64,000 nt of DNA, taken from NCBI GenBank assembly GCA_977020255.1, contig CDROCS010004052.1:1-64000 (forward strand), given 5' to 3'. Shown here one piece after another: positions 17,868-39,746 of the stretch. Under the pieces are notes generated by a model. It was not told the origin of the DNA and made no database searches. It worked only from the letters and a program-made list of their open reading frames with translations. Each line of letters begins with the position of its first letter. Within the stretch, counting starts at the first letter, position 1. Source of the stretch: Obrimoposthia wandeli (lineage: Eukaryota). The translations under genes were made by a program, and so were the position numbers.

Positions 17868-17935
17868 GCATAGTTTTTTTTAATCCTATATAGAAATTAA
17901 TACTATTTTATTAATATAAAAATTCACTCTATGCT
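17868..17935 (+). promoter_or_regulatory. LysR box + sigma70 promoter A of the hin-like regulon
   Basis: GCATAGTTTTTTTTAATCC (17868-17886), 14 nt, TACTATTTTAT; -35 TTTATT (17907-17912), 17 nt, -10 TATGCT (17930-17935). Confidence 0.7.
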
Positions 17936-18009
17936 CCTTTACTCCACTTTCTTTTGATTTACATCAAACTTAACTCAGCGATGTGAATAATAACAGCATA
18001 GGGTTTTCA

Positions 18010-19167
18010 ATGGCGCAGCAGCTCACTCTTGATATATTAAAACGGCTCATATCTTTTGATACCACCAGCTGTCATTCAAATTTGGCACTGATGCACTATA
18101 TCCAAGGATATTTGCACAGCTATGCTATCAGCAGCCAATTAATCTATAACGAACAGCGCACTAAAGCGAACCTCTACGCAACCATAGGCCCCGTAAATAA
18201 AGCGGGCATCATGCTTTCAGGGCACACCGATACCGTGCCTGTTACCGGCCAAAACTGGGAGAGCGACCCTTACCAGCTATCCCAGCGCAAAGGGCGACTA
18301 TATGGTCGCGGCAGCTGCGACATGAAAGGTTTTATAGCCACTGCATTAGCTGCAATACCCCAAATAGACACTAAAAAACTACACACACCTTTGCACCTTG
18401 CCTTCTCTTACGATGAAGAAATAGGCTGTATAGGCGTACGCCGCATGATTGATATGTTAGCCCAGCACCCTATTAAACCTTCTATTTGTATTATTGGCGA
18501 GCCAACTTCGATGCAAGTGGTGACAGCGCATAAAGGTAAAATTGCAGCGCGCGTCACTGTACAGGGCAAGGAATGCCATTCAGGTATGGCGCCCCAAGGG
18601 GTAAATGCAATTAACTACGCAGCAAGGCTGATTGTTTGGCTAGAGCAACTGGCGCTAGAGAAGCAAAACACCGGCCCATTTGATCCAAGCTACGACATTC
18701 CATACAGCACCGTGCATACCGGAACAATCAAAGGGGGTAATGCACTCAACATTGTTCCTAAACTCGCTACTTTCGATTTTGAAATCCGTAACATAGGAGC
18801 CGAATCTAGCACCCCTTTATTAGAGCGTTTACACACTTACGCTGATCAACTCAGTGCGCAAATGCAAACAATTGATAGCCACTGCCATATAGATATACAA
18901 ATAATTACACAGTACCCAGGGCTCACCACAACCAGAGATACTCATGCTATCGATTTTGTTAAAAAGCTTAGCGCAAACAACAGCATTGCCAGCATCAACT
19001 TTGGCACTGAAGGGGGTCTATTTAGCTCGCAACTAGGTGTAGCCACGCTGGTTTGCGGCCCTGGCAGTATGGATCAAGGGCACAAACCTAATGAGTTTGT
19101 CAGCCTGACACAAATAGAGCATTGCGAAGCATTTATGAGTCGTTTGATTAATGAAATAAGCGACTGA
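18010..19167 (+). CDS. argE: Acetylornithine deacetylase-like M20 amidohydrolase (ArgE family); probable hin pathway hydrolase
   Basis: LSGHTDTVP, GRGSCDMKGF, YDEEIGC, IIGEPT and GHKPNEF motifs. Alternative start GTG 17983. Confidence 0.85.
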   Translation: MAQQLTLDILKRLISFDTTSCHSNLALMHYIQGYLHSYAISSQLIYNEQRTKANLYATIGPVNKAGIMLSGHTDTVPVTGQNWESDPYQLSQRKGRLYGRGSCDMKGFIATALAAIPQIDTKKLHTPLHLAFSYDEEIGCIGVRRMIDMLAQHPIKPSICIIGEPTSMQVVTAHKGKIAARVTVQGKECHSGMAPQGVNAINYAARLIVWLEQLALEKQNTGPFDPSYDIPYSTVHTGTIKGGNALNIVPKLATFDFEIRNIGAESSTPLLERLHTYADQLSAQMQTIDSHCHIDIQIITQYPGLTTTRDTHAIDFVKKLSANNSIASINFGTEGGLFSSQLGVATLVCGPGSMDQGHKPNEFVSLTQIEHCEAFMSRLINEISD

Positions 19168-19269
19168 TACCGAACCGCTTTATCTGGATAAAAATGCGTA
19201 TTTAAGTAAGCGCTGCATCCTATCGTATTGCATCAGCTGACAATAAAATAAAAAAACCAGGAGGAAACT

Positions 19270-20694
19270 ATGCCCAACACATTCGCCCCTACTACGCAAT
19301 CAAGCGCGAGTAGCCCGCCCGTCAATAGCGGTTTTCGCCGCACTTTAGGCCTCGTATCACTACTCGCTGTCTCTGTGGGATTAGTTGTCTCGCAAGGGGT
19401 GATGGTACTGATGTTACAAGGTGCGGGCATTGCTGGTTTGGGCTTTATTATCCCTCTTATTATCGGCTATGTGCTGGCGCTGACTTATATCAGCTCTTTT
19501 TCTGAACTGTCTTTAATGATCCCAAGAGCGGGTGGCCTCAGTAGCTATACCGAGGTGGCTATTGGGCATTTTCCGGCGATTCTTGCGGTGTTCTCAGGTT
19601 ACGTTGTGGTTACTATGTTTGCAGTATCTGCAGAGCTATTGCTGGTCGATTACATTATTAACAAAATTTACCCTGGGATTTTCCCTAAGTACACTGTTGG
19701 CTTTAGCTTACTGGCACTCTTCACGTTATTAAACCTAAGGGGCATCGATGTCTTTGCCAAACTGCAATCGGTTTTAGCCTTTGTAATGATCGTTTTATTA
19801 TTAGCCATGGGCTTAGGTGCTGTTGGTGGTGTGGTTGAGCCAAAACCTGCAGGCATCGATTTAACAAGTAATTGGAATATGCTTGGCACTGAGGTGATTA
19901 CGTTAGTTGCATTGGCTATTTGGGGCTATGTAGGCGCTGAGTTTGTCTGCCCATTGGTAGAAAATGCCAAAAACCCGCAACGCGATATCCCTCGCTCAAT
20001 GACCATTGGTGTCACAGTTATTTTTGTCACTATTGCGCTGTACTGCCTAGGCGCACTCTATTATGTTCCCGCTGCAGATTTAGCGTCATCATCCCTACCA
20101 CATTACGATTTCGCCAAAGCAGCCTTTGGCGATGCAGGGCTTATTTTAATCGCTGTAGCCTCCGTCGCTGCTACTTGCAGTACGGTAAATACTTGTTTAG
20201 CGTCCATCCCGAGAATGCTCTATGGAATGGCACAAAATGGCCAAGTATTTCCACAGTTAAAAACACTCTCTAAGCGTACCAATACCCCTTGGGTTGCAGT
20301 GCTATTTGTCGCTGCCATTACTGGTATCCCTATGGTGTTACTCGCCGACCAGCCTGAATCTATCGGCTTACTGCTTATTTCTGCGGCAATTGCCTGGTTA
20401 TTTGCCTACATCATCACCCACATTAATGTTATTGCATTGCGCAAGCGCTATCCCAATATTGCACGACCTTACAAAACGCCTTTTTATCCGCTGCCACAAG
20501 TGGTTGGTATAGCTGGCATGTTATACGCAGTGGTTTACGCATCTCCTGCACCGGAGCTGAGCGCACAAATTTATGGTGCAGCTGGCGTCGTATTGGCTGT
20601 CGTGGCAATAATTGCTGCTATTTGGGTCAAACTGGTGATGAAGAAAAATCTGTTTACCCCAGAGCCGATCGAAAAAGCACTCGAGGCAAAATAG
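19270..20694 (+). CDS. APC family amine permease, HinA-like (candidate histamine permease)
   Basis: About 12 TM; GLVVSQGVMVLMLQG, FSELSLMIPRAGGLSSYTEVAIGHFPAIL and RPYKTPFYPLPQ, which I recall as close to the Pseudomonas HinA/PA0220 family. Confidence 0.82.
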   Translation: MPNTFAPTTQSSASSPPVNSGFRRTLGLVSLLAVSVGLVVSQGVMVLMLQGAGIAGLGFIIPLIIGYVLALTYISSFSELSLMIPRAGGLSSYTEVAIGHFPAILAVFSGYVVVTMFAVSAELLLVDYIINKIYPGIFPKYTVGFSLLALFTLLNLRGIDVFAKLQSVLAFVMIVLLLAMGLGAVGGVVEPKPAGIDLTSNWNMLGTEVITLVALAIWGYVGAEFVCPLVENAKNPQRDIPRSMTIGVTVIFVTIALYCLGALYYVPAADLASSSLPHYDFAKAAFGDAGLILIAVASVAATCSTVNTCLASIPRMLYGMAQNGQVFPQLKTLSKRTNTPWVAVLFVAAITGIPMVLLADQPESIGLLLISAAIAWLFAYIITHINVIALRKRYPNIARPYKTPFYPLPQVVGIAGMLYAVVYASPAPELSAQIYGAAGVVLAVVAIIAAIWVKLVMKKNLFTPEPIEKALEAK

Positions 20695-20828
20695 CGAGTT
20701 TTATACCGCTTTGCATCAGTATTATTAATGCTAAAGAGAAAAATTAAATATTTTATTTATGCCTAAAAAGTACCTAACGTACGCGTACTTAACTTGCGGC
20801 TAAAATTGACACTAGGAGCTAACTGAAA

Positions 20829-22223
20829 ATGTCCGACAATAACAATATCGATATGCAACAAGTATGGCAACAAGACAAAGACCACTACATTCATCCATGG
20901 ACAGACTTTTCTACCTTTAAAGAAACGGGGTCTATGATCCTTGCAGACAGTGATAATGTACATGTCAAAGATGGTGAAGGACGCGAGTATCTTGATGGTA
21001 TCGGTGGATTATGGTGTGTAAATATCGGCTATGCACGCAAAGAAATGGCCGATGCTATAGCAGAGCAAATCTGTAAAATCCCCTACTTCTCTAGCTTTGG
21101 TCATCACACAACGATACCGGCAGCACAATTATCTGCAAAATTAGCGGAACTGGCACCCGGTAATTTAAACCACGTATTTTACGGCTGTGGTGGCTCTGTT
21201 GCCAATGACACTGCGGTCAGAATCATTCATTTTTACTTTAACCAATTGGGTCAAAAGTCGAAGAAAAAGATTATCTCGCGCATTGATGGCTACCACGGTA
21301 GTACCTATATGGCGATGTCGATTACTGGTGTAAAGTTTGATCACATTGGTTTTGATATTGATAATCAATTAGTGCACCACATCTCTTGCCCTAATCCATA
21401 TCGCCGCCCTGATGAGCAAACAATTGCAGCATTTTGCGATGAAAAAGTCCAAGAGCTAGAAGATAAAATCCTCGAGCTAGGCCCTGACAATGTTGCCGCG
21501 TTTTTCGCAGAACCGATACTCGGAGCCGGGGGCGTTATTGTACCACCAGAAGGTTATCATAAACGCACTTTGGCTGTGTGTCGTAAGTATGGTGTACTCT
21601 ACGTATCGGATGAGGTAGTTACAGCGTTTGGTCGTTTAGGTCACATGTTCGCATCAGAAGATGAGTTTGGTATTGTGCCCGATATGATCACTTGCGCAAA
21701 AGGCCTAACATCGGGTTACTTGCCATTAGGAGCGACTATTCTCTCTGAGGATATTTACAACGTCATTAGTAAGCCACAAGCGGATGGTGCCATTTTTACC
21801 CATGGTTACACTTACTCAGGCCACCCGGTGAGCTGTGCAGCTGCTAATAAAAACATTGAAATAATGGAGCGGGAAAATATTTGCGGCCATGTTAAAGACA
21901 TGGGTGCTTATTTTGAAGCGCAAGTTAAGAGCTTAATCGATTTACCAATCGTCGGCGACGTACGCGGCAGAAAGTTCATGATGTGCATAGAAAATGTGGC
22001 TAACAAGCAAACTAAAGAGCTCATCGACTCTGATGCTAAAGTAGGTAATCGCATTGCAGATCACTGCCAAGAACGCGGCTTAATTGTACGCCCATTGGCA
22101 CATATGAATGTTCTTTCACCACCGTTGACACTCACTAAGGAAAATATAGATTTCCTAGTAAAAACATTACGTGAAAGTATTATAGCCACAACCGAAGATC
22201 TTAAAAAAGCAGGCTTCTTGTAA
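20829..22223 (+). CDS. Class III PLP aminotransferase, HinC-like (candidate histamine:pyruvate aminotransferase)
   Basis: YLDGIGGLWCVNIG, YHGST, SDEVVTAFGR, PLP lysine CAKGLTSGY and HGYTYSGHP motifs. Confidence 0.85.
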   Translation: MSDNNNIDMQQVWQQDKDHYIHPWTDFSTFKETGSMILADSDNVHVKDGEGREYLDGIGGLWCVNIGYARKEMADAIAEQICKIPYFSSFGHHTTIPAAQLSAKLAELAPGNLNHVFYGCGGSVANDTAVRIIHFYFNQLGQKSKKKIISRIDGYHGSTYMAMSITGVKFDHIGFDIDNQLVHHISCPNPYRRPDEQTIAAFCDEKVQELEDKILELGPDNVAAFFAEPILGAGGVIVPPEGYHKRTLAVCRKYGVLYVSDEVVTAFGRLGHMFASEDEFGIVPDMITCAKGLTSGYLPLGATILSEDIYNVISKPQADGAIFTHGYTYSGHPVSCAAANKNIEIMERENICGHVKDMGAYFEAQVKSLIDLPIVGDVRGRKFMMCIENVANKQTKELIDSDAKVGNRIADHCQERGLIVRPLAHMNVLSPPLTLTKENIDFLVKTLRESIIATTEDLKKAGFL

Positions 22224-22236
22224 TAAAGCGCCAAAC

Positions 22237-22260
22237 GCTCCCCTTTTATATGAGGGGGGC
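22237..22260. terminator. Hairpin between convergent genes (likely bidirectional terminator)
   Basis: GCTCCCCT...AGGGGGGC GC-rich stem between stops at 22223 and 22273. Confidence 0.5.
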
Positions 22261-22272
22261 TCTGCTAACCCA

Positions 22273-24627
22273 TTACTCAAACACCAGTGTTGATATCGCT
22301 ACCGGCTTACCCAGACCGTAACCTTGCAGATAGTTAATACCTATATTTTGACACTCACGCACTATCGCATCATTTTCTACATATTCAGCTATGGTTGCTA
22401 TTTTCATCACTTTACCCACTTGATGAATAGCCTGTACCATCGCTAAATCAATGGGATCATCCACCATATCACGTACAAATGCGCCATCTATTTTCAGGTA
22501 ATCAACTGGGAAGTTTTTTAAATAGGTAAATGAGGAAAGACCGCTACCAAAATCATCCAGAGCAAAGCTGCAACCTAATTTTTTTAAGCTTTTCATCAGC
22601 GATAACGCTTGAGGTAAATTGGCTATTGCCGTGGTCTCGGTTATTTCAAAGCATACTTGCTCACCTTGTACTATACCGTCTACAAAATGCTCAGCAACAA
22701 ATGCGCAGAACTGGGCATCCCCCAAGCAGGCGCCCGATAAATTGATCGCAACTTTAGGCCGGTATTGGCACTGTTTTTTTAACCAGCTAAACGTTTGGCT
22801 TATCACCCAACGATCTATATTGGACATAATCCCGTAGCGTTCTGCTAATGGAATAAACTCATTAGGGTAGATGATCTGATCATTGTCTGATACAAGACGA
22901 ATCAACACTTCATAGTGATGTATTGTTAAGGATTCGCCACAGACGATGGGCTGTGCATATAATGTAAATTGGTTATTATCTATCGCATCACTGATACGGT
23001 TTACCCACTCTAATTCTGCCTCTTTAACAGCCCCCTCTTCGTGTCTAAACACATGAATACGATTTTTCCCGCCTGCTTTGGCTTCATAGCAGGCAGTGTC
23101 TGCGTGGTGAATATAATTGCTAACCGAGTCTTTTTCGCGAATAGCAACAAAACCGATCGAGACTCCTATACGAAACACCTTTTCGTTCCAGTTGAAACGA
23201 AAGCCTTCAGTAACTTTTCTGAGTTGTTCTGCTATTTGCAGGCCTTTATGCAAAGAGCAATCATCTAATAACACGCCAAACTCATCTCCCCCTAATCGGG
23301 CGAGCAAGTCACTTTTGCGGATCTGCGATTCGAGTAGTGAGGTTAACTGCTTTAATAAATCATCACCCGCAGCGTGACCACAACTATCGTTGACTACCTT
23401 AAATTGGTCTAAATCCATAAATAAAAGAATATGCGATTTCTCCGCATTTCTTCGATCATCTATCGCCAATTGTAATTGCCGCTCAAATTCACGCCGATTG
23501 GCTAACCGGGTAAGTGGATCATGATTGGCGAACCATTTTAGCTCCTGGGTTAACTGTCTGGAACTAGTCACATCATGAAAAGCTAACACTGTGCCATGTA
23601 CTTTTTGATCGACCCCAATAATTGGAGCGGCTGAGTATTGAACTGCCTTTTCATCGCCTAACAAACTAATCAATAGGCTTTGATCTAAACTGTGCTGCAC
23701 TTCTTTTGTACTGATAGCCATTTGCGAAAAATCAGCGACTTGCTCCCGGCTTATTTCATGCAGTACTTTAAATACTTCACAAAGATTTTTACCTGCAGCT
23801 CCCTTATTAGTCCACCCCGTTAACCCCTCTGCCACGGGGTTTAGAAACTCAACCACGCTATCATTATCGCAGACAATGACCCCATCAATAATTGAGTTTA
23901 AAGTAGTAAGTGACTTTTCTTTTTCATTCCATAACTTTTGGTACGACTCTTTAGTATTCTGCTCTAATTGGTTAAACGCCTGTGCGAGTAGATCAAGTTC
24001 ATCAGGAGCAGAGCCACGCTTTTTGTGACGCTTGAGTTGCAGCGGAGCAGCATCCTTTTGAGGTTCAAAGCGCTGTAGACGCTCAAGCAGTTGATATAGA
24101 TGCCTAGAGACAAGGTAATGAAAAAATAGAATAATGAAGCCAGCAACAAGAAATGTCTTCAACGCATTACTGGCTAAAATAACCAACGCCTTTTCGATCA
24201 ATTGATCGTAAACCTCAGATAAATCAGCCAAAATCAACAGAGTACCGATGTTCTGATTTATACCTTTATAGCGATATTCAAGCGGCACACGTTTTTCTAT
24301 CACACTATCATGATCAGGACTGCCCGCTTGCCAGCGAACTTCGTCTTTGACCAATATGGCCAAATACTCAACGCCTTGTAGCTTTACTAAACTTTCTAAT
24401 TGCGTGCCAATTTGCTCATTATCAACCAACCAAACACTGTTCACTATGATCGGTAAACTGCTCACTTGGATTTCATACAAGTTATTATCAATAGCCTCCA
24501 CCGATTGGCGGTAATCAATGTAAAGTTGCACGGATGTGGTGAGCAGTGTCAGTACTGTGCTGAACATCACGACGCCCACAATTAATCGCTTTGCAATGAG
24601 GTTTTTTTTACTCAACCACTGCTTCAT
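22273..24627 (-). CDS. Membrane sensor - HAMP - PAS - GGDEF - EAL c-di-GMP enzyme
   Basis: Two TM segments around a periplasmic domain; PAS (IDGVIVCD...NPVAEGLTGW); HDPLTRLANR; intact GGDEF; EVLIR and DDFGSG. Confidence 0.92.
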   Translation of the reverse strand: MKQWLSKKNLIAKRLIVGVVMFSTVLTLLTTSVQLYIDYRQSVEAIDNNLYEIQVSSLPIIVNSVWLVDNEQIGTQLESLVKLQGVEYLAILVKDEVRWQAGSPDHDSVIEKRVPLEYRYKGINQNIGTLLILADLSEVYDQLIEKALVILASNALKTFLVAGFIILFFHYLVSRHLYQLLERLQRFEPQKDAAPLQLKRHKKRGSAPDELDLLAQAFNQLEQNTKESYQKLWNEKEKSLTTLNSIIDGVIVCDNDSVVEFLNPVAEGLTGWTNKGAAGKNLCEVFKVLHEISREQVADFSQMAISTKEVQHSLDQSLLISLLGDEKAVQYSAAPIIGVDQKVHGTVLAFHDVTSSRQLTQELKWFANHDPLTRLANRREFERQLQLAIDDRRNAEKSHILLFMDLDQFKVVNDSCGHAAGDDLLKQLTSLLESQIRKSDLLARLGGDEFGVLLDDCSLHKGLQIAEQLRKVTEGFRFNWNEKVFRIGVSIGFVAIREKDSVSNYIHHADTACYEAKAGGKNRIHVFRHEEGAVKEAELEWVNRISDAIDNNQFTLYAQPIVCGESLTIHHYEVLIRLVSDNDQIIYPNEFIPLAERYGIMSNIDRWVISQTFSWLKKQCQYRPKVAINLSGACLGDAQFCAFVAEHFVDGIVQGEQVCFEITETTAIANLPQALSLMKSLKKLGCSFALDDFGSGLSSFTYLKNFPVDYLKIDGAFVRDMVDDPIDLAMVQAIHQVGKVMKIATIAEYVENDAIVRECQNIGINYLQGYGLGKPVAISTLVFE

Positions 24628-24705
24628 TTAGACTCACTCAAAAGTAAAAAAACACATTGATTACTACTAAATATCAAGCTAATAGCCAATTTTTCCAGCG
24701 TATAC

Positions 24706-25446
24706 TTACTCAATTTTAAGGTATTTTTTTTGAATTGCTTCATATGTTCCATTGTTCTTTATCGTTTGTAAGCCCTCTTTAAATAGTGCGACCAAATGCG
24801 CATCGGACTCAGGGTTAAACGCCAAATACAGCTGATCTGAAAGTTCTTCTAACCGCAAGATTCGCTCAAACAATGCAGCATCTAAACCCTCTTCTTTGAC
24901 TGCATAGTTAAACGACGCCTCTTCGTAGGCAATTAAATCTATTCGATCGTTAACAAGTAATCGAATATTAAGCACATCACTGGACACTATTTTTAAAGCG
25001 GGAAACTGGTGTCGCTGCAAATAGGTCAGTGTCACATCGTTTAGTGATACGCCAATTTGATACTGTTTAGCTTGTTCAATCGAGTTCACTTGAACTGAGC
25101 TATTCGCCTTTAACTTATACAGTGACGTTTTATAAGGTGCTATTGCACCAACCCATCGAAATAAGGTCTCTCGTTCAGGAATTCTCGCGATCGAATAAAT
25201 CAAAGTATTTTTCTCATTGCGGGCTATTTCATAAGCTCTCGCCCACGGATAAAACTCTATCGACGCTGTTAAATTAACCTCATCTAACACTGCTTGCACC
25301 ACTTCACTAGACAGGCCTTTTGCCTTATCAGCAACTTCATAGTTATAAGGAGCAAAGCTTTCAGTTACAACTTTCAAGGGTTCGGCCTGTGCAGCGCTCA
25401 CAACGAGTAGTGAAAAAAGTAATACGATACCTATTCTCGTAACCAT
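24706..25446 (-). CDS. Orphan amino-acid-type solute-binding protein (SBP_bac_3-like)
   Basis: Signal peptide; VVTESFAPYNY, FYPWARA and LYLAFN motifs. Start ATG 25446 with SD GGAG. No adjacent permease or ATPase. Confidence 0.85.
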   Translation of the reverse strand: MVTRIGIVLLFSLLVVSAAQAEPLKVVTESFAPYNYEVADKAKGLSSEVVQAVLDEVNLTASIEFYPWARAYEIARNEKNTLIYSIARIPERETLFRWVGAIAPYKTSLYKLKANSSVQVNSIEQAKQYQIGVSLNDVTLTYLQRHQFPALKIVSSDVLNIRLLVNDRIDLIAYEEASFNYAVKEEGLDAALFERILRLEELSDQLYLAFNPESDAHLVALFKEGLQTIKNNGTYEAIQKKYLKIE

Positions 25447-26003
25447 AGAGCTAACTCCTAACGCGTTATTTGATACCAAATAAGTATAGCAAAGAAGAAT
25501 AAAAGTGCAGGTTTAAAAAGAAATTAGTGTCGCAAAAAATGAATAGTATTATTATATTTACAGACCCCTCATTATTGTTTATCTAAGGTCTTATCTACTG
25601 TGCCTTAGTTACATTGTGTTGATTTGACAAGATATTTTTATTTGCAATCGCTTTCGCCTAGTAAAGTAGAATACCGTAGCATGCGATGAAGCGCAGCGAG
25701 CAGCAGTGTATATTTCTTTTGTTCTTTACAACATCAGCTTTAAACATTTAACGGCTAACCTCTTCGGTTTAAATTGCACATACCTACCCATTACAATGGT
25801 GTAATCATAGCAACTTTATTCGCTTTTACAGCCTGGCATGATGTGGGTATTATCGACCAATCAACCCGTTTTTTTGCAGATATACCAACGCAAAGTAATA
25901 TACGAGATCTTGTTTTAACTATGCTAGAAAAGACACGCCCTAGCCCCGTTTGTCTTTTGAACTAAAATGTTTAGATATTTTATATGACAAAGTGAGCGAT
26001 ACA

Positions 26004-26615
26004 ATGAAGCCTAGCAAACTAATATTTCTTCCCGGTGCCGGTGGCGATAAAAATTTTTGGGCACCTGCCTCAAATTTAATTAATCATTCGGCGCAAAGAG
26101 AGTTTATTGAATGGCCTGGTATTAGTGGTGCACAAGAAAACCCTAATATAAAAAGCTTTGATGACTTAGTTGTGAGTATTACGGATAAAATTGACCAGCC
26201 TTGTGCCATTATTGCTCAATCTATGGGTGGTGTTGTAGGTGTTCTTGCTTTATTACAGCAACCAGAATTAATTACCCATTTAGTACTAGTCGTTACTTCT
26301 GGAGGTATTAATATAAGTGATATTCATCATGAAAACTGGCGTCTCGCATATAAACAAGAAAACCCCGCATACCCTGACTGGTTCACAAATTATACTGAGG
26401 ATCTTACAGATCAATTAAAAAAGATTAACATACCTGTGCTATTAATTTGGGGCGACTGTGATCCTATAAGCCCTGTGGCTATAGGTGAACGACTAAATAA
26501 AATATTTTTGGACTCTCAACTAGAAGTAATAAGTGAAGGCGATCATGCACTGGCAAATAAGCTTCCCAAAGTCGTTGCATCACTTATTAATAGTCATCTC
26601 AAAAAAGCGCAATAA
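26004..26615 (+). CDS. Alpha/beta fold hydrolase
   Basis: FLPGAGG oxyanion region, nucleophile AQSMGG, WGDCD and catalytic GDH. Start set at ATG 26004. Confidence 0.85.
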   Translation: MKPSKLIFLPGAGGDKNFWAPASNLINHSAQREFIEWPGISGAQENPNIKSFDDLVVSITDKIDQPCAIIAQSMGGVVGVLALLQQPELITHLVLVVTSGGINISDIHHENWRLAYKQENPAYPDWFTNYTEDLTDQLKKINIPVLLIWGDCDPISPVAIGERLNKIFLDSQLEVISEGDHALANKLPKVVASLINSHLKKAQ

Positions 26616-26684
26616 TCACAAAAAAACGATCACTATTTGTATATGAGTATCACTACCGACTGTTTAATTTAAGGTGAAAGACAA

Positions 26685-27230: not shown

Positions 27231-27362
27231 CGTTTGCGATATAGCTGAAGTACAAAACAAAAAACCTTTATTTATCGACAGATTCAAGGACTGGCTATTT
27301 ATTGTTCCAATGTTAAAGTACTTTAAAATCATCTTAATATAACCTTTATTGGGGGCTTAACT

Positions 27363-30518: not shown

Positions 30519-30532
30519 TTTTGCTCACCTAG

Positions 30533-30559
30533 TGTGTATTTTTTTAAACTATATACACA
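30533..30559. promoter_or_regulatory. Inverted repeat upstream of vapBC, likely autoregulatory operator
   Basis: TGTGTAT-N13-ATACACA directly upstream of the vapB start. Confidence 0.6.
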
Positions 30560-31066: not shown

Positions 31067-31708
31067 TCAACTGCGGTTTGTCAGTAAGGTGACACCTGCA
31101 AAAGCGAAAAATGTACCAAGAACTCCTTGGATAGCACGGCGGGATTTACCGTAAAGTCGTACCATGGCAGGTGTTGAGAATGCGACGGCATAAAGAATGT
31201 GAATTGCAATTGACATCGCAAAGGTTCCAACTACGATGGCTACACCAACCCATAACGGAGCACCATCGTGCAAGCTCAAAGAAATAATGGCTATCCACGA
31301 TAGTGCTGCTTTTGGATTAGTCATTTGGATGAGATACCCACGTTTAAAATACCCGAATGGAGCACGTCGACCTCCTCTTAATTCTTTAGCCTCTATGTCG
31401 TGTGCGGATGTTGCGGACTTGAAAGACTTGTATGCAAGCCACAATAAATATATACCTCCGAAAATTTTGATCAACAATAGCGCCCAAGCGTAAGTTGCCA
31501 ATATAACCGACAAACCAGATATAGTCAGAAGCGCCCATGTAAACGAACCCGTAGCCACCCCCAATGCTAAAGATATTCCAGATTTTCGCCCTACTTCCAT
31601 TGATGTGCCTATCACTGCAAGGATATTGGGGCCGGGACTTGCAACACCCAATAAAAAAGCTGAATACGCGAGAAGAATGCCCGGAAGATAGAGAGTAAAG
31701 TCTTGCAT
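31067..31708 (-). CDS. LysE/RhtB family translocator
   Basis: SPGPN, GGIYLLWLAY and QMTNPKA motifs; six TM. Confidence 0.9.
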   Translation of the reverse strand: MQDFTLYLPGILLAYSAFLLGVASPGPNILAVIGTSMEVGRKSGISLALGVATGSFTWALLTISGLSVILATYAWALLLIKIFGGIYLLWLAYKSFKSATSAHDIEAKELRGGRRAPFGYFKRGYLIQMTNPKAALSWIAIISLSLHDGAPLWVGVAIVVGTFAMSIAIHILYAVAFSTPAMVRLYGKSRRAIQGVLGTFFAFAGVTLLTNRS

Positions 31709-31992
31709 AGTATGCTCCTAAGAAATAATACGTCTCGTATTTTTATCTGTTTCAGTTCAACCGTAATGGCGATTGAAGCTCAATGAGTATCGCTAGCTTT
31801 AACCGCTCAAAGCAAGCTGTCTAGCCTATAGAGCTGCATATTAACTAGTTTACCTATGCTTAAGATGGAAGGAAAATTTCTATTTTTTGAAAATTACATA
31901 TATTTTATAAGTCACATATTTCTTAAAATCTAAATTTGTGTTGAGCACCGCGCCAAAAAATTTTGTGCTTTGGTTAATAAAATCAATTATCC

Positions 31993-32019
31993 GCGCTCAG
32001 CCAATACAGAACTGAGCGC
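31993..32019 (-). terminator. Hairpin downstream of the aldehyde dehydrogenase gene
   Basis: GCGCTCAG-N11-CTGAGCGC, 17 nt after the stop codon. Confidence 0.5.
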
Positions 32020-32036
32020 ATTAATTTTCTGTGGGG

Positions 32037-33527
32037 TTATCCCAACTTTATCCAGGTAGTTTTCAGCTGAGTAAATTTATCCAAAGCGTGTAGAGATAAA
32101 TCTCTGCCAAAACCAGACTGCTTGTAGCCGCCAAATGGCGTACTAAAATCCAGTGCATCCATGGTATTAATTGAGACCGTCCCCGCTTTTAAACGCTTAC
32201 TAACACGGTGCGCACGATTAATATTAGTGGTCCATATAGAGGCAGCTAAGCCGTAGATTGAATCGTTGGCAATGCTCACAGCTTGTTCTTCACTATCAAA
32301 GCCTATCACCGCTGCTACTGGGCCGAACACTTCTTCGCGAGCTATCGTCATATCGCTGCTTACATCACTAAATATAGTCGGTGTAACGACAGCATCATCT
32401 GTTGATGTAACACCGCCTGTTAATAATGTTGCGCCCTCACGCTGTGCGTTTTCAATACAAGCACGTACATTTTTCGCGTGGTTTACATCAATCAATGCAC
32501 CGACTTGAGTGTCAAACTCTAGCGGGTCTCCTACTTTCATACTTTGCGCTTTGGCGACAAACTTCTCTAAAAACGCTGCTTTGATGCTATTTTCAACGAG
32601 CACCCGCGAATTGGCCGAACACACCTCCCCTTGATTAAAGAATATCCCCATCGTCGCGTGTTCAACAGCGGCGTCTAAATCGCAATCTGCAAAAATTAAA
32701 TTTGGACTTTTACCACCGGTTTCTGGCCATACTTGTTTCATGTTTGACTCCCCCGAGTAAGCCATAAACAATTTGCCGACCTCGGTTGATCCAGTAAACG
32801 CTAAGCAATCCACATCATTGTGTAACCCCAGCGCTTTACCGACGATTTGACCATGCCCTGTGACGACATTGAGCACCCCATCAGGCAAGCCTGCTTGCTT
32901 TGCTAATTCCGCTAATTTAAGTGCCGTTAACGGCGATTGCTCAGCGGGTTTTAATACCACTGAATTACCGCTAATTAAAGCAGGTGCGAGCTTCCACGCG
33001 GCAATATCTAACGGGAAATTCCAAGGAACCACGGCTGCAACCACCCCAACCGGTTCGCGAGTAATAGTCGCTATGTTGTTATTATCTGTAGGAGCGACTT
33101 CCCCATACAGCTTATCAATAGCCTCTGCGTACCACTCAAAGCAACCAGCAGAACCAGGAATATCTACATTCAACGCATCTTGAATTGGCTTACCAACATT
33201 TAGGCTCTCTAGTAACGCTAACTCCTCTATATTATCCATGATCAGCACTGCGAGCTTTTTCATCACAGCTTTGCGCATCGCTGGTGCTAAATCTGCCCAA
33301 ACACCACTTTCAAAGCTGCTGCGAGCGGCATCAACCGCACGATCTACATCGTCTGTAGTGCACGCCGCTGTTGCTGTTAATAACTCACCGGTCGCTGGGT
33401 TGATTGTCTCATATGTGCCACCATCGCTGGCATCGCAAAATTCACCTGCAATAAAGGCTTGTGATTGCAGCGCCAAGTTCGCCTGTTTTGCTAGCCAGTA
33501 AGCTCTGTCTTGATTGGTCATATTCAT
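32037..33527 (-). CDS. NAD-dependent aldehyde dehydrogenase, PuuC/HinD-like (candidate imidazole-acetaldehyde dehydrogenase)
   Basis: VVPWNFP, LKPAEQSP, FTGSTEVG, catalytic ETGGKSP and NQGEVC, EEVFGPV and PFGGYKQSGFGRD motifs. Confidence 0.9.
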   Translation of the reverse strand: MNMTNQDRAYWLAKQANLALQSQAFIAGEFCDASDGGTYETINPATGELLTATAACTTDDVDRAVDAARSSFESGVWADLAPAMRKAVMKKLAVLIMDNIEELALLESLNVGKPIQDALNVDIPGSAGCFEWYAEAIDKLYGEVAPTDNNNIATITREPVGVVAAVVPWNFPLDIAAWKLAPALISGNSVVLKPAEQSPLTALKLAELAKQAGLPDGVLNVVTGHGQIVGKALGLHNDVDCLAFTGSTEVGKLFMAYSGESNMKQVWPETGGKSPNLIFADCDLDAAVEHATMGIFFNQGEVCSANSRVLVENSIKAAFLEKFVAKAQSMKVGDPLEFDTQVGALIDVNHAKNVRACIENAQREGATLLTGGVTSTDDAVVTPTIFSDVSSDMTIAREEVFGPVAAVIGFDSEEQAVSIANDSIYGLAASIWTTNINRAHRVSKRLKAGTVSINTMDALDFSTPFGGYKQSGFGRDLSLHALDKFTQLKTTWIKLG

Positions 33528-33545
33528 TTCCTTTATTTTTATTTG

Positions 33546-35426
33546 TTAGACGGCGTTGCTATGAACCGCATTAGTGCGAACTCGCCTCGGGGCCGTCATA
33601 TTTTCTACACTGAGAATATCTTCAAGCGCTTCAGGGGTTAGTAAGCCCTCTAGCAAGACTAAATCTCGCACACTGTGATTCCCCTCTATTGCTTGTTTAG
33701 CCAATCGAGTTGCATTGTCATATCCGATGTAAGGATTCAGTGCCGTGATAATTCCTATGCTGTTGTTCACCATTTTCAAGCAGTGCTCGCGATTAGCACT
33801 AATCCCTTTAATGCACTTGCTCGCAAGGGTTTCTATTGCTCTTGTTTGCAAGCGCAACGACTGTAATACATTAAATGCGATCACAGGTTCCATCACATTT
33901 AACTGCAACTGTCCCGCCTCTGCTGCCATTGTTATCGCAATGTCATTACCTATCACTTGAAACGCTACTTGGTTAACCATTTCAGGAATCACAGGGTTCA
34001 CTTTACCCGGCATTATTGAGCTACCTGGCTGCATTGCTGGTAAATTAATCTCTCGAAAGCCTGCGCGCGGGCCACTTGAAAGCAAGCGTAAGTCATTACA
34101 TATTTTTGATAACTTCACCGCATTGCGTTTAAGCACGCTTGAGAAGGTCACAAATGCGCCCATATCAGAGGTGGCTTCTATTAAGTTTTTGGCAGCAACC
34201 ATCTCTTTGCCACTAATTTGGCACAACTCTTCAATCACCAAAGATGAGTATTCAGGATCTGTATTTATCCCCGTACCTATCGCCGTGGCTCCCATATTTA
34301 TTTCACGAAAATACTGCACAACATCTTTTGCTTCTTGAATATCTTCTTTTACTGTGGAGTACCAAGCATCAAACTCTTGGCCTAATGTAATCGGCACTGC
34401 ATCTTGTAGCTGTGTACGACCCATTTTGACAACAGAGCAAAACTCCACCGCTTTTTGTTTAAACTGGTAACACAGTGCTGATAACGCACTCACGTATTCT
34501 TGATGACTAAGTAAAATACTCAGGCGAATAGCGGTAGGGTAAGCATCGTTGGTCGATTGCGATAAGTTGACATGGTTATTAGGGTGTAAATGTTGATAAT
34601 CTGCCCGCCGGTGGCCAAGAATTTCTAACGCGCGATTAGCAATCACTTCGTTCGCGTTCATATTGGTCGAAGTGCCTGCCCCTCCTTGAATCACATCGAC
34701 AACAAAATGAGAGTGCCATTCACCTGCGATAATTTCATCGCACGCTTGGTCAATAGCTGCTGCTTTAGGCGGCTCCAATATACCGAGTTTACAGTTGGCT
34801 TTTGCCGCGGCTTTTTTCACCATAGCCAATGCATTCACTAGCTGAGGAAAATGTTTAAGCTTGATTCCTGTAATTGCAAAATTTTCAGTAGCACGTAACG
34901 TTTGTATACCGTACAACGCACTATTAGGGACTTCTCGCTCACCGAGTAAGTCTTTTTCGATGCGAACCGTCTCTGTGCGCGGTACATTTTTATGACAGCG
35001 CTGACGGTTCATTTCTAAGTGTAGTAGCCATGCTGCAAGCACTGCCGTGCGATCTGATAACAGCATCCACTGCTCAAGAGAGCAGCGCTCTATCTGTAAT
35101 AAAACCAGCTCAGACAACGCCTGGTATTGAACACGAATGTCTGAATTTTCTTCATCATTATGGGACTCAGTTATCGGTTTAGTTGTCGTTTTAATTAGCA
35201 ACAGCGGGTTGCACAATGCAGGGGCTTCAATGACTAACTCAGTCAAATGGGTGAAGGCTATAGTCCCTTGTATTAACACCGTTAATTTTTGCGGATGACT
35301 CACAAAAGTGCAACCTTTAGAGAGCGGCTCTAGCTGGCATATGTCTAACAACGTGTTCCATTCGGTATCTTTCAAGTGGGTGCATTTAAGCACCGCTTTA
35401 ATTAATTTCTTATTATTGGCAATCAT
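33546..35426 (-). CDS. aspA: Aspartate ammonia-lyase with an N-terminal extension of about 150 aa (HinI-like)
   Basis: RIEKDLLG, YGIQTLRA, QGGAGTSTNMNANEV, KMGRTQLQDAVP and signature GSSIMPGKVNP. Start ATG 35426 (SD AAGAGAAG). Confidence 0.9.
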   Translation of the reverse strand: MIANNKKLIKAVLKCTHLKDTEWNTLLDICQLEPLSKGCTFVSHPQKLTVLIQGTIAFTHLTELVIEAPALCNPLLLIKTTTKPITESHNDEENSDIRVQYQALSELVLLQIERCSLEQWMLLSDRTAVLAAWLLHLEMNRQRCHKNVPRTETVRIEKDLLGEREVPNSALYGIQTLRATENFAITGIKLKHFPQLVNALAMVKKAAAKANCKLGILEPPKAAAIDQACDEIIAGEWHSHFVVDVIQGGAGTSTNMNANEVIANRALEILGHRRADYQHLHPNNHVNLSQSTNDAYPTAIRLSILLSHQEYVSALSALCYQFKQKAVEFCSVVKMGRTQLQDAVPITLGQEFDAWYSTVKEDIQEAKDVVQYFREINMGATAIGTGINTDPEYSSLVIEELCQISGKEMVAAKNLIEATSDMGAFVTFSSVLKRNAVKLSKICNDLRLLSSGPRAGFREINLPAMQPGSSIMPGKVNPVIPEMVNQVAFQVIGNDIAITMAAEAGQLQLNVMEPVIAFNVLQSLRLQTRAIETLASKCIKGISANREHCLKMVNNSIGIITALNPYIGYDNATRLAKQAIEGNHSVRDLVLLEGLLTPEALEDILSVENMTAPRRVRTNAVHSNAV

Positions 35427-35562
35427 TTCGCTTCTCTTACACCTAGTGGTGTATTGATACGGTTGAAAAGAGCGCACTAAATTTCATTGCCATCACCCAA
35501 AATGGTTATCACTCAACTGCTGGTATTCAGGTGATAGTCAATAAAGTCAGTGGCGCACCCTC

Positions 35563-35630
35563 AGCCTAAGAAGTGACGTTGCATATGTAAAATATTATAA
35601 ATATGTCATATGCATCAGTTTTTTTAATGC
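35563..35630 (-). promoter_or_regulatory. LysR box + sigma70 promoter B of the hin-like regulon
   Basis: 19-mer GCATCAGTTTTTTTAATGC (35612-35630). On the minus strand: 14 nt, TAATATTTTAC (35597-35587); -35 TTTACA, 17 nt, -10 TAGGCT (35568-35563). Confidence 0.7.
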
Positions 35631-35800
35631 AAAAAAATAAACAGAGCCAGTGCCCCGTGTTTCTGAGGGCTTGGCACTTTTATAACGCACTTTTAATGCA
35701 ATTTTTTAACGATTTTCTACCAAGCAACTCCGCAATAAGACCTAACTGGATAATCAAACACCTAGCTGCCACCGCTTAATTCAAACGGCGATGAACTTTA

Positions 35801-36778
35801 TCAAAGATCTTTATCAACTGGTTTTGTATCAACAGGATCCAAATGTTTATAAAATCGCTGATCAGTAAACACTGATTTCGCCAATTCAGCGGCCCTCTCT
35901 TTCAAGGTTTTAATGAATGCATCTGCGATTGGGGTCAACCGAAAGCGCGATATTTTAGCGACACCTAAGCGTAGTGGACGCAGCTTACCACGCAGTGGAA
36001 TAGCGACTATTTCACTGCCATCTAGCGCTAAGTTATTTGCCAGTGGTGTGTTAAACAACGAATAACCAAACCCATTAGCAACCAAGCCACGCACCATCGC
36101 TAAAGATTGCGCACGATAGGCAAAATTCGGTTCTAAATCTTGGCTTAAAAATAACGAAAAGAAATATTCACGGCTCATTGGCCAGTCTAATAGCACCATC
36201 GGATACTGAGCTAATTCATCCAGTGACAGCTCTTCGCAGTGCGCCAGTGGGTGGTCTTTAGCTAACACCGCATAAGGGGGAAACTCAATAACCGGCTCAA
36301 ATTCAATGTCTGTCGGTAACTGTAAATCATAGGTTAACGCCAACTCGTAACGCCCATCCATCAAGCTTTGAATAATATCTTTTTGGTGGCTTTCATCACA
36401 CTGAATATCGACACCTGGATAGGTGTCGATAAACTTCTTCATCAACGATGGCAGTAAAATTGGAGTGAAAGTAGGGAAGCTTACAATACGTAAAGAGCCG
36501 GCAATATCTTCCCCTAAGCTAGTGGCGTATTGACCTAAGCTCTCTGCATCGAGCAGGAGTTGTTTCGACTTAAGAATAAACTGGCGTCCAGCAGGTGTGA
36601 GTGACAACCCTTGTGCATGATGCCTTACAAACAGCTGTAAACCAGTGGCTTGCTCTAAGTGTAAAATGGCAGAAGAAATTGACGGTTGAGACACATAGAG
36701 CTCCTCAGCCGCACGCGTAACACTGCTGTGCTCCCCGGCTTTAACAAAATAGCGTAAATGTTTTAATGTGAAGTGCAT
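35801..36778 (-). CDS. LysR family regulator, HinK-like
   Basis: HTH LRYFV...YVSQPSISSAI..LE...LFVRHHAQGLSLTPAG; divergent from the monooxygenase operon. Confidence 0.9.
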   Translation of the reverse strand: MHFTLKHLRYFVKAGEHSSVTRAAEELYVSQPSISSAILHLEQATGLQLFVRHHAQGLSLTPAGRQFILKSKQLLLDAESLGQYATSLGEDIAGSLRIVSFPTFTPILLPSLMKKFIDTYPGVDIQCDESHQKDIIQSLMDGRYELALTYDLQLPTDIEFEPVIEFPPYAVLAKDHPLAHCEELSLDELAQYPMVLLDWPMSREYFFSLFLSQDLEPNFAYRAQSLAMVRGLVANGFGYSLFNTPLANNLALDGSEIVAIPLRGKLRPLRLGVAKISRFRLTPIADAFIKTLKERAAELAKSVFTDQRFYKHLDPVDTKPVDKDL

Positions 36779-36926
36779 AATAAAATCTCAGGTTATAACC
36801 AGCACTCTGATGAGCGCCTGCATTAATAATTATTTACTAAAAACCATACTAGATTCGAAATAATAATTCAAAGGCCATCAAAAATCATTCGTGTCCCTGT
36901 CAATCTTCACACTTATATTTTCCTCT

Positions 36927-36994
36927 GCATAGTTTTTTATAATCCTTTTGCTCAGTTAATAATATTTTACCAATCCAGAGAGTTTTTCTACTCT
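36927..36994 (+). promoter_or_regulatory. LysR box + sigma70 promoter C of the hin-like regulon
   Basis: GCATAGTTTTTTATAATCC (36927-36945), 14 nt, TAATATTTTAC (36960-36970); -35 TTTACC, 17 nt, -10 TACTCT. Confidence 0.75.
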
Positions 36995-37134
36995 GATCCA
37001 TCTGACCTAGCAGGGAATGTGCAGCGTTGCTCTAATATGCGCAAACATCAGCGGCCAAGTTTTCACTGGCGCACATTCAAGAGGTCTGATCCAGCTCTCA
37101 TTGAGAGACAGAACAACTAAAACAGGATAAAAAC

Positions 37135-38385
37135 ATGACAGTTGAAAACATAGACACTTTGGTAATTGGAGCTGGGCAAGCTGGCGTCGCTATGAGTGAA
37201 CACTTAAGCAAGTTACAAGTACCTCATATCGTATTAGAGCGCGATCGCATTGCCGAGCGCTGGCGCACTGGCCGCTGGGATTCGCTAGTCGCCAATGGAC
37301 CCGCTTGGCACGACCGCTTCCCCGGTTTAGAGTTTGAGGGGGTTGATGATAATGCCTTTGCACCAAAAGAGCGTGTAGCAGACTATTTTGTAGAATACGC
37401 CAAAAAATTTAAAGCACCCATACGCACCGGGGTTGCTGTGATAAAAGTACAGCGCAATGCTAACCAAGCGGGCTTCACGGTAGAGACATCTCAAGGGGTG
37501 ATCAACGCCCAGCGCGTCGTCGCGGCAACCGGACCTTTTCAACGCCCTATTATCCCGGCAATTGCACCGCAAGATGATCGTTTGCATCAAATACACTCTG
37601 CTGATTATCGCAACCCAGAACAACTGCCTGAAGGTGGGGTAATGGTTATCGGTGCAGGATCTTCCGGTGTGCAAATTGCCGATGAGCTGCGCCGCTCTGG
37701 TCGAGAAGTGCATTTATCTGTTGGCCCTCATGATCGCCCCCCTCGCAGTTATCGCAACCGAGATTTTGTCTGGTGGTTAGGTGTATTAGGCGAGTGGGAT
37801 GCAGCGGCCATGAAGCCCGGTACTGAGCATGTCACTATCGCTGTTAGTGGTGCTCACGGTGGACACACTATCGATTTTAGAAACCTTGCAAATCAAGGGA
37901 TCAACTTAGTCGGGCACACCGACTCATTTAACAATGGCGTGGTTAAGTTTCAGGGTGATTTAGTAGATAACATCAACCGTGGTGATGAAAACTATAACAG
38001 CCTACTCGATGCCGCAGATGCTTACATTGAGCGCAACGGTTTGGATCTTCCACTGGAGCCACAGGCACGCCAAACTTACACTGACGCTGAATGCATCAGT
38101 AATCCAATTCGTGAGCTAAACCTTGAAGCCGCCGGAATAAATAGCATTATTTGGGCGACGGGATTTGCACTAGATTACAGCTGGATGCAAGTAGATGCCT
38201 TTGATGATAAAGGTAAACCCGCTCACCAACGCGGTGTCTCAACTGAATCTGGTATCTATTTTATTGGCTTGCCTTGGCAGTCACGTCGCGGCTCATCATT
38301 TATCTGGGGAGTATGGCACGATGCAAAGTACGTAGCGGATCATATCCAAACCCAGCGCACTTATTTAGCTTACACAGATGCCTAA
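37135..38385 (+). CDS. Flavin-dependent monooxygenase (FMO-like), HinF-like (candidate imidazole-acetate monooxygenase)
   Basis: FAD motif VIGAGQAG, IHSADYRNP, NADPH motif VIGAGSSGVQIA and IIWATGF. Confidence 0.85.
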   Translation: MTVENIDTLVIGAGQAGVAMSEHLSKLQVPHIVLERDRIAERWRTGRWDSLVANGPAWHDRFPGLEFEGVDDNAFAPKERVADYFVEYAKKFKAPIRTGVAVIKVQRNANQAGFTVETSQGVINAQRVVAATGPFQRPIIPAIAPQDDRLHQIHSADYRNPEQLPEGGVMVIGAGSSGVQIADELRRSGREVHLSVGPHDRPPRSYRNRDFVWWLGVLGEWDAAAMKPGTEHVTIAVSGAHGGHTIDFRNLANQGINLVGHTDSFNNGVVKFQGDLVDNINRGDENYNSLLDAADAYIERNGLDLPLEPQARQTYTDAECISNPIRELNLEAAGINSIIWATGFALDYSWMQVDAFDDKGKPAHQRGVSTESGIYFIGLPWQSRRGSSFIWGVWHDAKYVADHIQTQRTYLAYTDA

Positions 38386-38458
38386 TTTCTTCACCTTAAA
38401 TAGATGTTCTTTATAAGTAGTGCTCGCGCTGCTTTATTTTCCCAATTCGGAGTGATAA

Positions 38459-38872
38459 ATGCCAACACATACCCGTATCCGCATGTTTAATACCAAAGAA
38501 ACCTACCCAAACCAAAATTTAGATAATGACCTATGCCAAGCAGTGCGCGCCGGTAATACCGTTTACGTGCGCGGCCAAGTTGGCACTGATTTTGATGGCA
38601 ATTTAGTCGGCCTTGGCGATCCTGGCGCCCAAGCAGAACAAGCCATGAAAAACGTTAAACAGCTCTTAGAAGAGGCGGGATCTGACATAAGCCATGTTGT
38701 CAAAACCACCACCTATATCACAGATCCACGCTATCGCGAGGATGTGTATCGTGAAACCGGCAAATGGTTTAAAGGGGTTTACCCAATCTCCACTGGCATT
38801 GTAGTACAAGCACTGGCACAGCCGCAGTGGTTGATGGAAATAGACATCATCGCCGTTATTCCAGATAAGTAA
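38459..38872 (+). CDS. RidA/YjgF family enamine deaminase, HinL-like
   Basis: VYVRGQVG, QAEQAMKNV, STGIVVQALA and LMEIDIIA motifs. Confidence 0.9.
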   Translation: MPTHTRIRMFNTKETYPNQNLDNDLCQAVRAGNTVYVRGQVGTDFDGNLVGLGDPGAQAEQAMKNVKQLLEEAGSDISHVVKTTTYITDPRYREDVYRETGKWFKGVYPISTGIVVQALAQPQWLMEIDIIAVIPDK

Positions 38873-38897
38873 ACCCAGCGTATTTTTAGGAGTCACT

Positions 38898-39569
38898 ATG
38901 ACATTTTCAGTTGCAGGCGTATGTCCCGATACAGGCATGGTGGGTTGTGCGATTACCTCATCGAGCATTTGCGTAACCAGCCGCTGTGCATTCACTCGCG
39001 CTAATACCGGCGTTGCACTCACTCAAAATATAACCAACCCAGATTTAGGCCCGCTGGCACTCGATTTAATGCAGCAAGGACAAAGCAGTGCGCAAATTAT
39101 GCAGGCATTAGCCAGCGCCGATAGCGACGTACAGTGGCGTCAACTAGGGATCTTAGCTCTGGATGGCCAAAGCAGCACCTTTAGCGGAGCACAAGCATTG
39201 GGTATACACGCCACTGCCAGTGGCAAAAATTGCATCGCTATGGGTAACTTATTGGCAAACGAGCAAGTGCCTCAAGCCATGATAGACAGTTTTGAAAACA
39301 GCCGTGGTCATCTCGCTGAGCGCTTAATTAGCGCACTGCATGCGGGCAAAAAAGCCGGTGGTGAGCTAGGCCCTATTCACTCAGCGGGTATTAACGTAAA
39401 CGCCCAAGCCGATTGGCCAGTGGTCGACTTGCGCGTAGATTGGCACGAACAACCCATCGATCAATTGACACAATTATGGGCCTTATACGAGCCGCAAATG
39501 CAGGCATATATCACCCGTGCCACGGACCCTGCCAATGCCGAATCTTACGGCGTACCCGGCGACGAATAG
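38898..39569 (+). CDS. DUF1028 Ntn-hydrolase-fold protein (hin pathway hydrolase homologue)
   Basis: N-terminal nucleophile start MTFSV; TQNITNP, RQLG, GNLLAN, DLRVDWH and PSYGVPGDE-like terminus (AESYGVPGDE). Confidence 0.85.
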   Translation: MTFSVAGVCPDTGMVGCAITSSSICVTSRCAFTRANTGVALTQNITNPDLGPLALDLMQQGQSSAQIMQALASADSDVQWRQLGILALDGQSSTFSGAQALGIHATASGKNCIAMGNLLANEQVPQAMIDSFENSRGHLAERLISALHAGKKAGGELGPIHSAGINVNAQADWPVVDLRVDWHEQPIDQLTQLWALYEPQMQAYITRATDPANAESYGVPGDE

Positions 39570-39590
39570 CAACTCAAAAACTAAATAATA

Positions 39591-39629
39591 GAGTGTAGTC
39601 GCTCTGATATTCGCAGCAGCACTACACTC
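39591..39629 (+). terminator. Hairpin after the DUF1028 gene
   Basis: GAGTGTAGT...ACTACACTC, 9-bp inverted repeat. Confidence 0.45.
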
Positions 39630-39678
39630 AAAGCTCCTAACAGGCTGTTTTATAGGTAACTATTTAAAGGCGCCATTT

Positions 39679-39746
39679 GGATAAGTTTTATCTATCCCAA
39701 AAGCACGATTTTAATATTTTACTAATACGCAGCAAAACCCTAACGT
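39679..39746 (+). promoter_or_regulatory. LysR box + sigma70 promoter D of the hin-like regulon
   Basis: GGATAAGTTTTATCTATCC (39679-39697), 14 nt, TAATATTTTAC (39712-39722); -35 TTTACT, 17 nt, -10 TAACGT. Confidence 0.7.

Follow-up and report, generated by a model that had tools for sequence, protein, structure and literature searches.

Five composite promoter sites form the predicted operators of a LysR-type regulator of histamine-type catabolic genes

The stretch of DNA analyzed here, 64,000 nucleotides of contig CDROCS010004052.1 (positions 1 to 64,000, forward strand; Obrimoposthia wandeli assembly GCA_977020255.1) and referred to below as the window, contains five composite promoter sites that share one arrangement: an upstream dyad, a second conserved block, and -35 and -10 hexamers at fixed distances. 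We consider it likely that a LysR-type regulator encoded in the same window uses these sites as its operators and that they define a regulon for the catabolism of histamine, imidazole-4-acetate, or a close analogue. This regulator is the predicted binder because the sites have LysR-type anatomy, lie beside the LysR gene, and covary with the regulator clade. The regulator and the sites, the latter scored with a 71-column weight matrix built from related genomes, are as follows.

35801..36778, minus strand: LysR-type regulator, 325 amino acids, Pfam domains HTH_1 and LysR_substrate
17867..17935, plus strand: P1; dyad 17868-17886, core 17901-17911, -35 17907-17912, -10 17930-17935; 45.9 bits
20712..20780, plus strand: P5; dyad 20713-20731, core 20746-20756, -35 20752-20757, -10 20775-20780; 46.4 bits
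35563..35631, minus strand: P2; dyad 35630-35612, core 35597-35587, -35 35591-35586, -10 35568-35563; 62.9 bits
36926..36994, plus strand: P3; dyad 36927-36945, core 36960-36970, -35 36966-36971, -10 36989-36994; 59.3 bits
39678..39746, plus strand: P4; dyad 39679-39697, core 39712-39722, -35 39718-39723, -10 39741-39746; 36.4 bits, the lowest of the five

P1 to P4 align without gaps as a 19-mer G(C/G)AT-N11-AT(C/G)C, 14 nucleotides (nt), the block TA(A/C)TATTTTA(C/T), a 17-nt spacer, and a -10 hexamer. The -35 hexamers (TTTATT, TTTACA, TTTACC, and TTTACT) consist of the last five bases of the block and the next base, and the -10 hexamers are TATGCT, TAGGCT, TACTCT, and TAACGT. An earlier reading made from the sequence only had described these four promoters, and every 19-mer, gap, block, hexamer, and spacer that it listed was found again in its place. 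Its 19-mer at 35612 was correctly located but quoted on the plus strand; in promoter orientation, the center of the P2 dyad is A-rich rather than T-rich. The count of four sites has to be raised to five, as P5 (20713-20780) lies before the aminotransferase gene, between it and the permease gene, with a -35 of TTTATT, a 17-nt spacer, and a -10 of TAACGT.

Similar sequences could arise in AT-rich intergenic DNA by chance, or the resemblance could stem from recent duplication of a promoter cassette without any shared regulator. The dyad by itself would be compatible with chance, since its 9 matches in the window are not significant against 4.55 expected, and the 11-mer TA(A/C)TATTTTA(C/T) by itself was matched 4 times against 0.57 expected. 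The full pattern GSAT-N11-ATSC-N14-TAMTATTTTAY, in contrast, had 5 matches with up to 2 mismatches where 0.01 were expected from 100 dinucleotide-preserving shuffles, so that the motif is not common in random AT-rich DNA, as the sequence-only reading had required of it; it was likewise absent from the reversed sequences of the related loci (1.53 Mb) described below, although it is conserved there across bacterial orders. A weight-matrix scan for further members, which had been suggested for the whole genome and here covered the 64-kb window, returned the five sites at 36 to 63 bits and no other site at or above 12 bits, with none at or above 8 bits in the reversed window. Mean pairwise identity among the five sites is 0.68 in motif columns and 0.31 elsewhere, close to the random expectation of approximately 0.26. 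As conservation is position specific and the remaining columns are near random identity, the five sites are not recent copies of one piece of DNA. Based on the shuffle statistics, the reversed controls, and the random identity outside the motif, we rejected both chance and recent DNA duplication, to which we assign a practically negligible probability.

To place the window in a wider context, we assembled 79 loci with an orthologous LysR (one genome per species; 1.53 Mb; 39 to 69% guanine plus cytosine [GC]). The nearest relatives of the window LysR, at most 88% identical, are found in Amphritea, an Osedax symbiont, and other Oceanospirillaceae, and the whole set spans Oceanospirillaceae, Marinomonas, Zobellella, Oceanisphaera, Vibrio/Grimontia, and Cellvibrionaceae as well as Leucothrix, Halomonadaceae, Salinisphaera, and two alphaproteobacterial metagenome-assembled genomes (MAGs). 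In nearly all of these loci, the LysR gene is syntenic with homologues of the catabolic genes of the window. For example, Halomonas carries monooxygenase, Rid, DUF1028, and M20 genes on one side of the regulator and aldehyde dehydrogenase, permease, and aminotransferase genes on the other, which match hinFLHG and hinDAC. The composite pattern with up to 3 mismatches matched 121 times in the 79 loci and never in the reversed sequences. The matrix at a threshold of at least 15 bits yielded 148 matches, with at least one in 74 of the 79 loci and nothing at or above 5 bits in the reversed control. Most of the matches (130/148) are correctly oriented toward a window-gene homologue that begins less than 450 nt downstream of them, and in most loci a composite site stands beside the LysR gene itself, either divergent or just past its stop codon. 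The matches are listed below by downstream gene, with the polarity of the central A/T tract of the dyad in promoter orientation where this was counted.

Monooxygenase: 48 matches; T-rich in 39/48
Aldehyde dehydrogenase: 27 matches; A-rich in 22/27
Aspartase: 20 matches; A-rich in 17/20
Aminotransferase: 17 matches; T-rich in 13/17
M20: 8 matches; T-rich in 8/8
Rid: 4 matches
PotA: 3 matches; T-rich in 3/3
Permease: 2 matches
LysR: 1 match

The relationship of the window LysR to HinK, the regulator of histamine catabolism in Pseudomonas aeruginosa, is less direct than structural similarity would imply. Among solved structures, its best match is 3fzv/6m5f (E value of 1e-65), followed by CysB (4e-26). 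From the context of a close homologue (P0381), 3fzv/6m5f is probably P. aeruginosa PA0218 (HinK). Apo HinK has been solved structurally, and in P. aeruginosa, imidazole-4-acetate prompts HinK to bind and activate the promoters of hinD and hinF (PMC8231116). Matching of short peptides from the PDB alignment led to the Pseudomonas-type clade, which was confirmed against the PDB through protein P0171, 63% identical to the 3fzv/6m5f chain. In a maximum-likelihood tree, the window-type clade (100/99) stands apart from the Pseudomonas-type clade (100/100), with many cluster representatives between them, and regulators of the two types are approximately 40% identical. The tree places the window LysR outside the PA0218-type (HinK) orthologue group, so the label "HinK-like" of the sequence-only reading applies only loosely. 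Since regulators of the Pseudomonas type are present in Amphritea, Marinomonas, and Oceanobacter as well, the window regulator belongs to a different subfamily and is not simply the local orthologue.

The operator variant changes together with the regulator clade. We compared the window-type loci with 84 Pseudomonas-type loci (4 from exact look-ups and 80 from metagenomes), which contain homologues of hinD, hinC, and hinF. At the same 15-bit threshold, the window-type matrix recognized none of the 84 Pseudomonas-type loci. The hinD promoters of these loci instead carry the block CCAGtTTTTTCaT-N9-gACATTTTTA(A/C)TATTTTTcCT-N16-gCCACCATC, for which we counted 44 occurrences, 35 of them upstream of an aldehyde dehydrogenase gene. 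In this block, the TA(A/C)TATTTT core keeps its register to a -10-like xAxxxT (positions 63 to 68, counted along the composite site), and the A-G-T-tract at positions 5 to 12 is shared with the window type, but the GCAT..ATGC dyad is lacking. A published HinK operator sequence for comparison was not found by a literature search, which did not reach the primary 2021 paper. A motif variant that switches with the regulator clade is as expected if the adjacent LysR is the binder, and the proposal of a single regulon with a LysR operator is borne out by composite sites beside the orthologous regulator and catabolic genes in the window-type set and by their complete absence from the Pseudomonas-type set.

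The composite site could also be bound by another transcription factor; in Pseudomonas putida, the further regulators HinB and HinJ act on hin genes. Three regulators have been reported for the hin genes of P. putida U (PMC8231116), and binding by the LysR is here a prediction from sequence. However, a T-N11-A dyad centered near -65 with a second site at -35 is a hallmark of LysR-type operators, the immediate proximity to the LysR gene recurs in most of the 79 loci, and the motif covaries with this regulator in particular. We therefore regard a different binding factor as very improbable.

Column conservation across 98 non-redundant related sites reveals the anatomy of the operator. T4 (98/98) and A16 (97/98) form the T-N11-A signature, although both columns were part of the search pattern and are ascertainment-biased. 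Columns outside the pattern are conserved as well, and on the dyad side they include T at position 0 (86/98), A at position 5, T14 (81/98), and A or T at position 20, with positions 9 to 11 exclusively A or T in 98/98 sites. Because the flanking T at position 0 and A at position 20 are conserved outside the pattern, the upstream site extends to a 21-bp dyad, TGSAT-N11-ATSCA (positions 0 to 20), with an A/T-only center. Further downstream, T31, A32, A33, A47 (93/98), T48, C50, and A51 are conserved, as are the -10-like columns T63 (85/98), A64 (85/98), C67 (70/98), and T68 (85/98). The -10-like TAnnCT (positions 63 to 68) is at one fixed distance from the dyad, the center of which lies 53 nt upstream of it.

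The block at positions 31 to 51 appears to be a second 21-bp regulator site, in the same frame as the dyad and 31 bp, or three helical turns, downstream of it. The right half of the dyad recurs in it as its own right half, ATnCA; a T-tract forms its center, whereas the left half (TAATA) has diverged. The second site overlaps the -35 (TTTAYN) and includes the near-invariant core ATATTTTA. The sequence-only reading had correctly noted that TA(A/C)TATTTTA(C/T) overlaps the -35, but the block is more than a -35 and forms the core of this second regulator-type site. The ATATTTTA core is retained in 64/78 sites from the 35 loci with a GC fraction above 0.58. After a match to the dyad only, 62/62 exact ATATTTTA cores sit at a single offset; conversely, the loci contain 158 ATATTTTA octamers in all, and approximately 126 are accompanied by a dyad at the correct distance. 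Dyad and second-site core are obligately coupled. The loci also contain 151 dyad-only matches away from composite sites, mostly far from hin genes, for which the reversed control is a poor one because the pattern is a short palindrome.

In the standard layout of LysR-type activators, a recognition site is centered near -65 and an activation site overlaps the -35, as in the operators of CbnR, BenM/CatM, and AtzR. If transcription starts approximately 7 nt after TAnnCT, the dyad would be centered near -65 and the second site near -34, over the -35. A search for sequencing runs that could show transcription starts returned DNA-type runs of one sample only. The T-N11-A dyad, the weaker symmetry of the second site, the weak -10, and the position of the regulator gene, next to its target or divergent from it, all agree with this layout. 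The operator differs from it in that the best-conserved core belongs to the second site rather than to the recognition dyad, and in that P2 lies just past the regulator's own terminator and is co-directional instead of divergent. The mechanism that we propose would have the dyad as the high-affinity LysR site, with a LysR tetramer occupying the dyad (approximately -75 to -55) and the second site (approximately -44 to -24) and bending the DNA. The inducer would be a pathway intermediate, most likely imidazole-4-acetate by analogy, and its binding could reposition the downstream dimer and thereby bring RNA polymerase to a promoter that is weak by itself, while a terminator would insulate the LysR gene from P2.

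Several observations weigh against this proposal. The left half of the second site, TAATA, is unlike the dyad half-site, so that the case for a regulator site here is one of conservation and geometry. Both promoter hexamers were assigned solely from their positions, and a simple sigma-70 consensus scan of 35480-37140 calls neither P2 nor P3. The -10 hexamers agree with TATAAT at just three to four positions. A weak -10 that is missed by a consensus scan fits activator dependence but does not prove it. Finally, as the window LysR is not an orthologue of the characterized HinK, we infer the inducer from gene context alone.

In an alternative reading, the dyad alone is the LysR site and the TA(A/C)TATTTTAC block is a separate promoter element, whether an unusual extended -35/UP-like element, a bendable tract, or the site of an obligate partner factor. 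Besides overlapping the -35 and lacking a dyad-like left half, the block is common to two regulator clades with differing upstream sites and is more conserved than the dyad, which second sites of LysR-type operators usually are not. A promoter element, however, would not readily explain why ATAT at positions 36 to 39, upstream of the -35 hexamer, is invariant even in genomes with 60 to 69% GC, or why the right flank of the block, ATnCA, reproduces a dyad half-site exactly 31 bp away. The block without a dyad is also no commoner than chance, with approximately 32 orphan octamers against 28 in the control. Overall, we consider a separate element improbable, and we retain the reading in which both sites are occupied by the LysR.

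Across genomes, the polarity of the dyad's central tract follows the class of the target gene, as the counts above indicate, and the window obeys the same rule, with P2 A-rich and P1, P3, P4, and P5 T-rich. It is possible, though on balance unlikely, that the TA(A/C)TATTTT block is the primary recognition and activation element of the whole family and that the polarity of the dyad tract sets the output of each promoter class. This tentative idea draws on the near invariance of the block, its presence with two LysR clades that have differing upstream sites, and its fixed register to the -10. If true, it would turn around the hierarchy usual for LysR operators, where conservation is anchored in the upstream dyad.

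These results provide, for a widespread and uncharacterized LysR clade, a precise operator of approximately 50 bp in which the critical bases are defined. This clade would govern histamine/imidazole-acetate-type catabolism in marine Oceanospirillaceae, Halomonadaceae, Vibrionaceae, Zobellella, and others, and the regulator in these bacteria is not an orthologue of Pseudomonas HinK even though the same gene set would be controlled. In various genomes, the predicted regulon is extended by genes for an aspartase, an ABC importer, a Gcw_chp protein of the outer membrane, and a sodium:solute symporter. The fifth site, the 50-bp consensus kept in more than 70 genomes, and the HinK-distinct clade with its own dyad are new, as would be a second site more conserved than the dyad and the extension of the regulon to aspartase and several transporters. 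The operator layout itself is textbook LysR type and the regulon of the Pseudomonas counterpart has been characterized, so no new kind of mechanism is involved. For biosensors of histamine or imidazole-acetate, the operator could be a ready-made component.

The genes that the five sites are predicted to control, together with a feature next to the regulator gene, are listed here.

17983-19167, plus strand: M20 (ArgE/DapE-type) deacylase, predicted P1 target
19270-20694, plus strand: APC-family permease, following the M20 gene without a motif between the two
20829-22223, plus strand: class-III aminotransferase with a HinC-like role, predicted P5 target
32037-33527, minus strand: aldehyde dehydrogenase, HinD-like, predicted P2 target
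33546-35477, minus strand: aspartate ammonia-lyase homologue, predicted P2 target
35641..35658, minus strand: hairpin resembling a terminator, with a T-run after it, located between the stop codon of the LysR gene and the P2 dyad
37135-38385, plus strand: flavin-dependent monooxygenase, predicted P3 target
38459-38872, plus strand: Rid family protein, predicted P3 target
38898-39569, plus strand: DUF1028 protein, predicted P3 target
39870..43707, plus strand: PotA/B/C/D-like ABC importer of four genes, predicted P4 target

P3 is on the divergent side of the LysR gene, 149 nt from its start, and P2 lies 171 nt beyond its stop, co-directional with it. The hairpin probably insulates the LysR transcript from the aspartase/aldehyde dehydrogenase operon. 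For the LysR gene's own promoter, neither inspection by eye nor a consensus scan gave a convincing minus-strand -35/-10 in 36779-36926. P1 is predicted to drive the M20 deacylase gene and probably also the permease gene. The aspartase homologue has approximately 165 extra N-terminal residues that fall outside any NCBIfam or Pfam model.

In Pseudomonas, histamine is catabolized via imidazole-4-acetate by the products of hinC, hinD, hinF, hinL, hinH, and hinG, after which aspartate is converted to fumarate (PMC8231116). The window enzymes match this set at the family level, and the order monooxygenase-Rid-DUF1028 equals hinF-hinL-hinH. Compared with their counterparts in loci with Pseudomonas-type regulators, the aldehyde dehydrogenase is 61% identical, the monooxygenase 67 to 70%, the Rid protein 86 to 88%, the M20 deacylase 49 to 52%, the DUF1028 protein 46 to 49%, and the aminotransferase only 36%. 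As with HinK, the LysR-type activator stands beside aldehyde dehydrogenase and aminotransferase genes and would control a monooxygenase-Rid-DUF1028-hydrolase operon, and Pseudomonas-type hinD promoters share the block and A-G-T-tract in register. Beyond its separate, well-supported clade and the GCAT-N11-ATGC dyad, the window system differs from that of HinK in adding to its predicted regulon the aspartase, the M20 deacylase under its own promoter, and the PotABCD-like importer.

Three loci with Pseudomonas-type HinK homologues have a different gene content. In Amphritea sp., P. cichorii, and Serratia (L082, L083, and L084), the regulator gene adjoins monooxygenase-Rid-DUF1028(-M20) genes along with genes for a PhyH dioxygenase, a fused ABC permease/ATPase, and a solute-binding protein, plus a class II aldolase in L082 and L084. 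This looks like a different upstream module that may feed apparently the same lower pathway.

Several window-type loci have further features of their own. A composite site precedes the gene of a Gcw_chp (PF09694) protein in five Oceanospirillaceae loci, as listed here by locus.

L006, 16119-16790: Gcw_chp gene
L008, 18190-18939: Gcw_chp gene
L010, 18077-18751: Gcw_chp gene
L015, 18498-19172: Gcw_chp gene
L020, 18334-19029: Gcw_chp gene

Similarly, a composite site precedes a sodium:solute symporter gene in Kushneria and Halomonas (L043 and L047). The sites before these Gcw_chp and symporter genes suggest that the regulon differs from genome to genome in its uptake components. In a MAG labeled Phycisphaeraceae (L007), both the LysR locus and the operator scarcely differ from their Pontibacterium counterparts (L008 and L009), and its 453-kb contig is probably mis-binned or mislabeled. 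In Aliamphritea spongicola (L076, approximately 10940-16680), the LysR gene is approximately 5.7 kb away from the P2-type site and aspartase gene, whereas this distance is only approximately 100 to 250 nt in other loci, which suggests an insertion. Two Marinobacterium loci (L025 and L026, approximately 5084-6015) encode a second window-type LysR, 61 to 62% identical, approximately 4 kb from the first.

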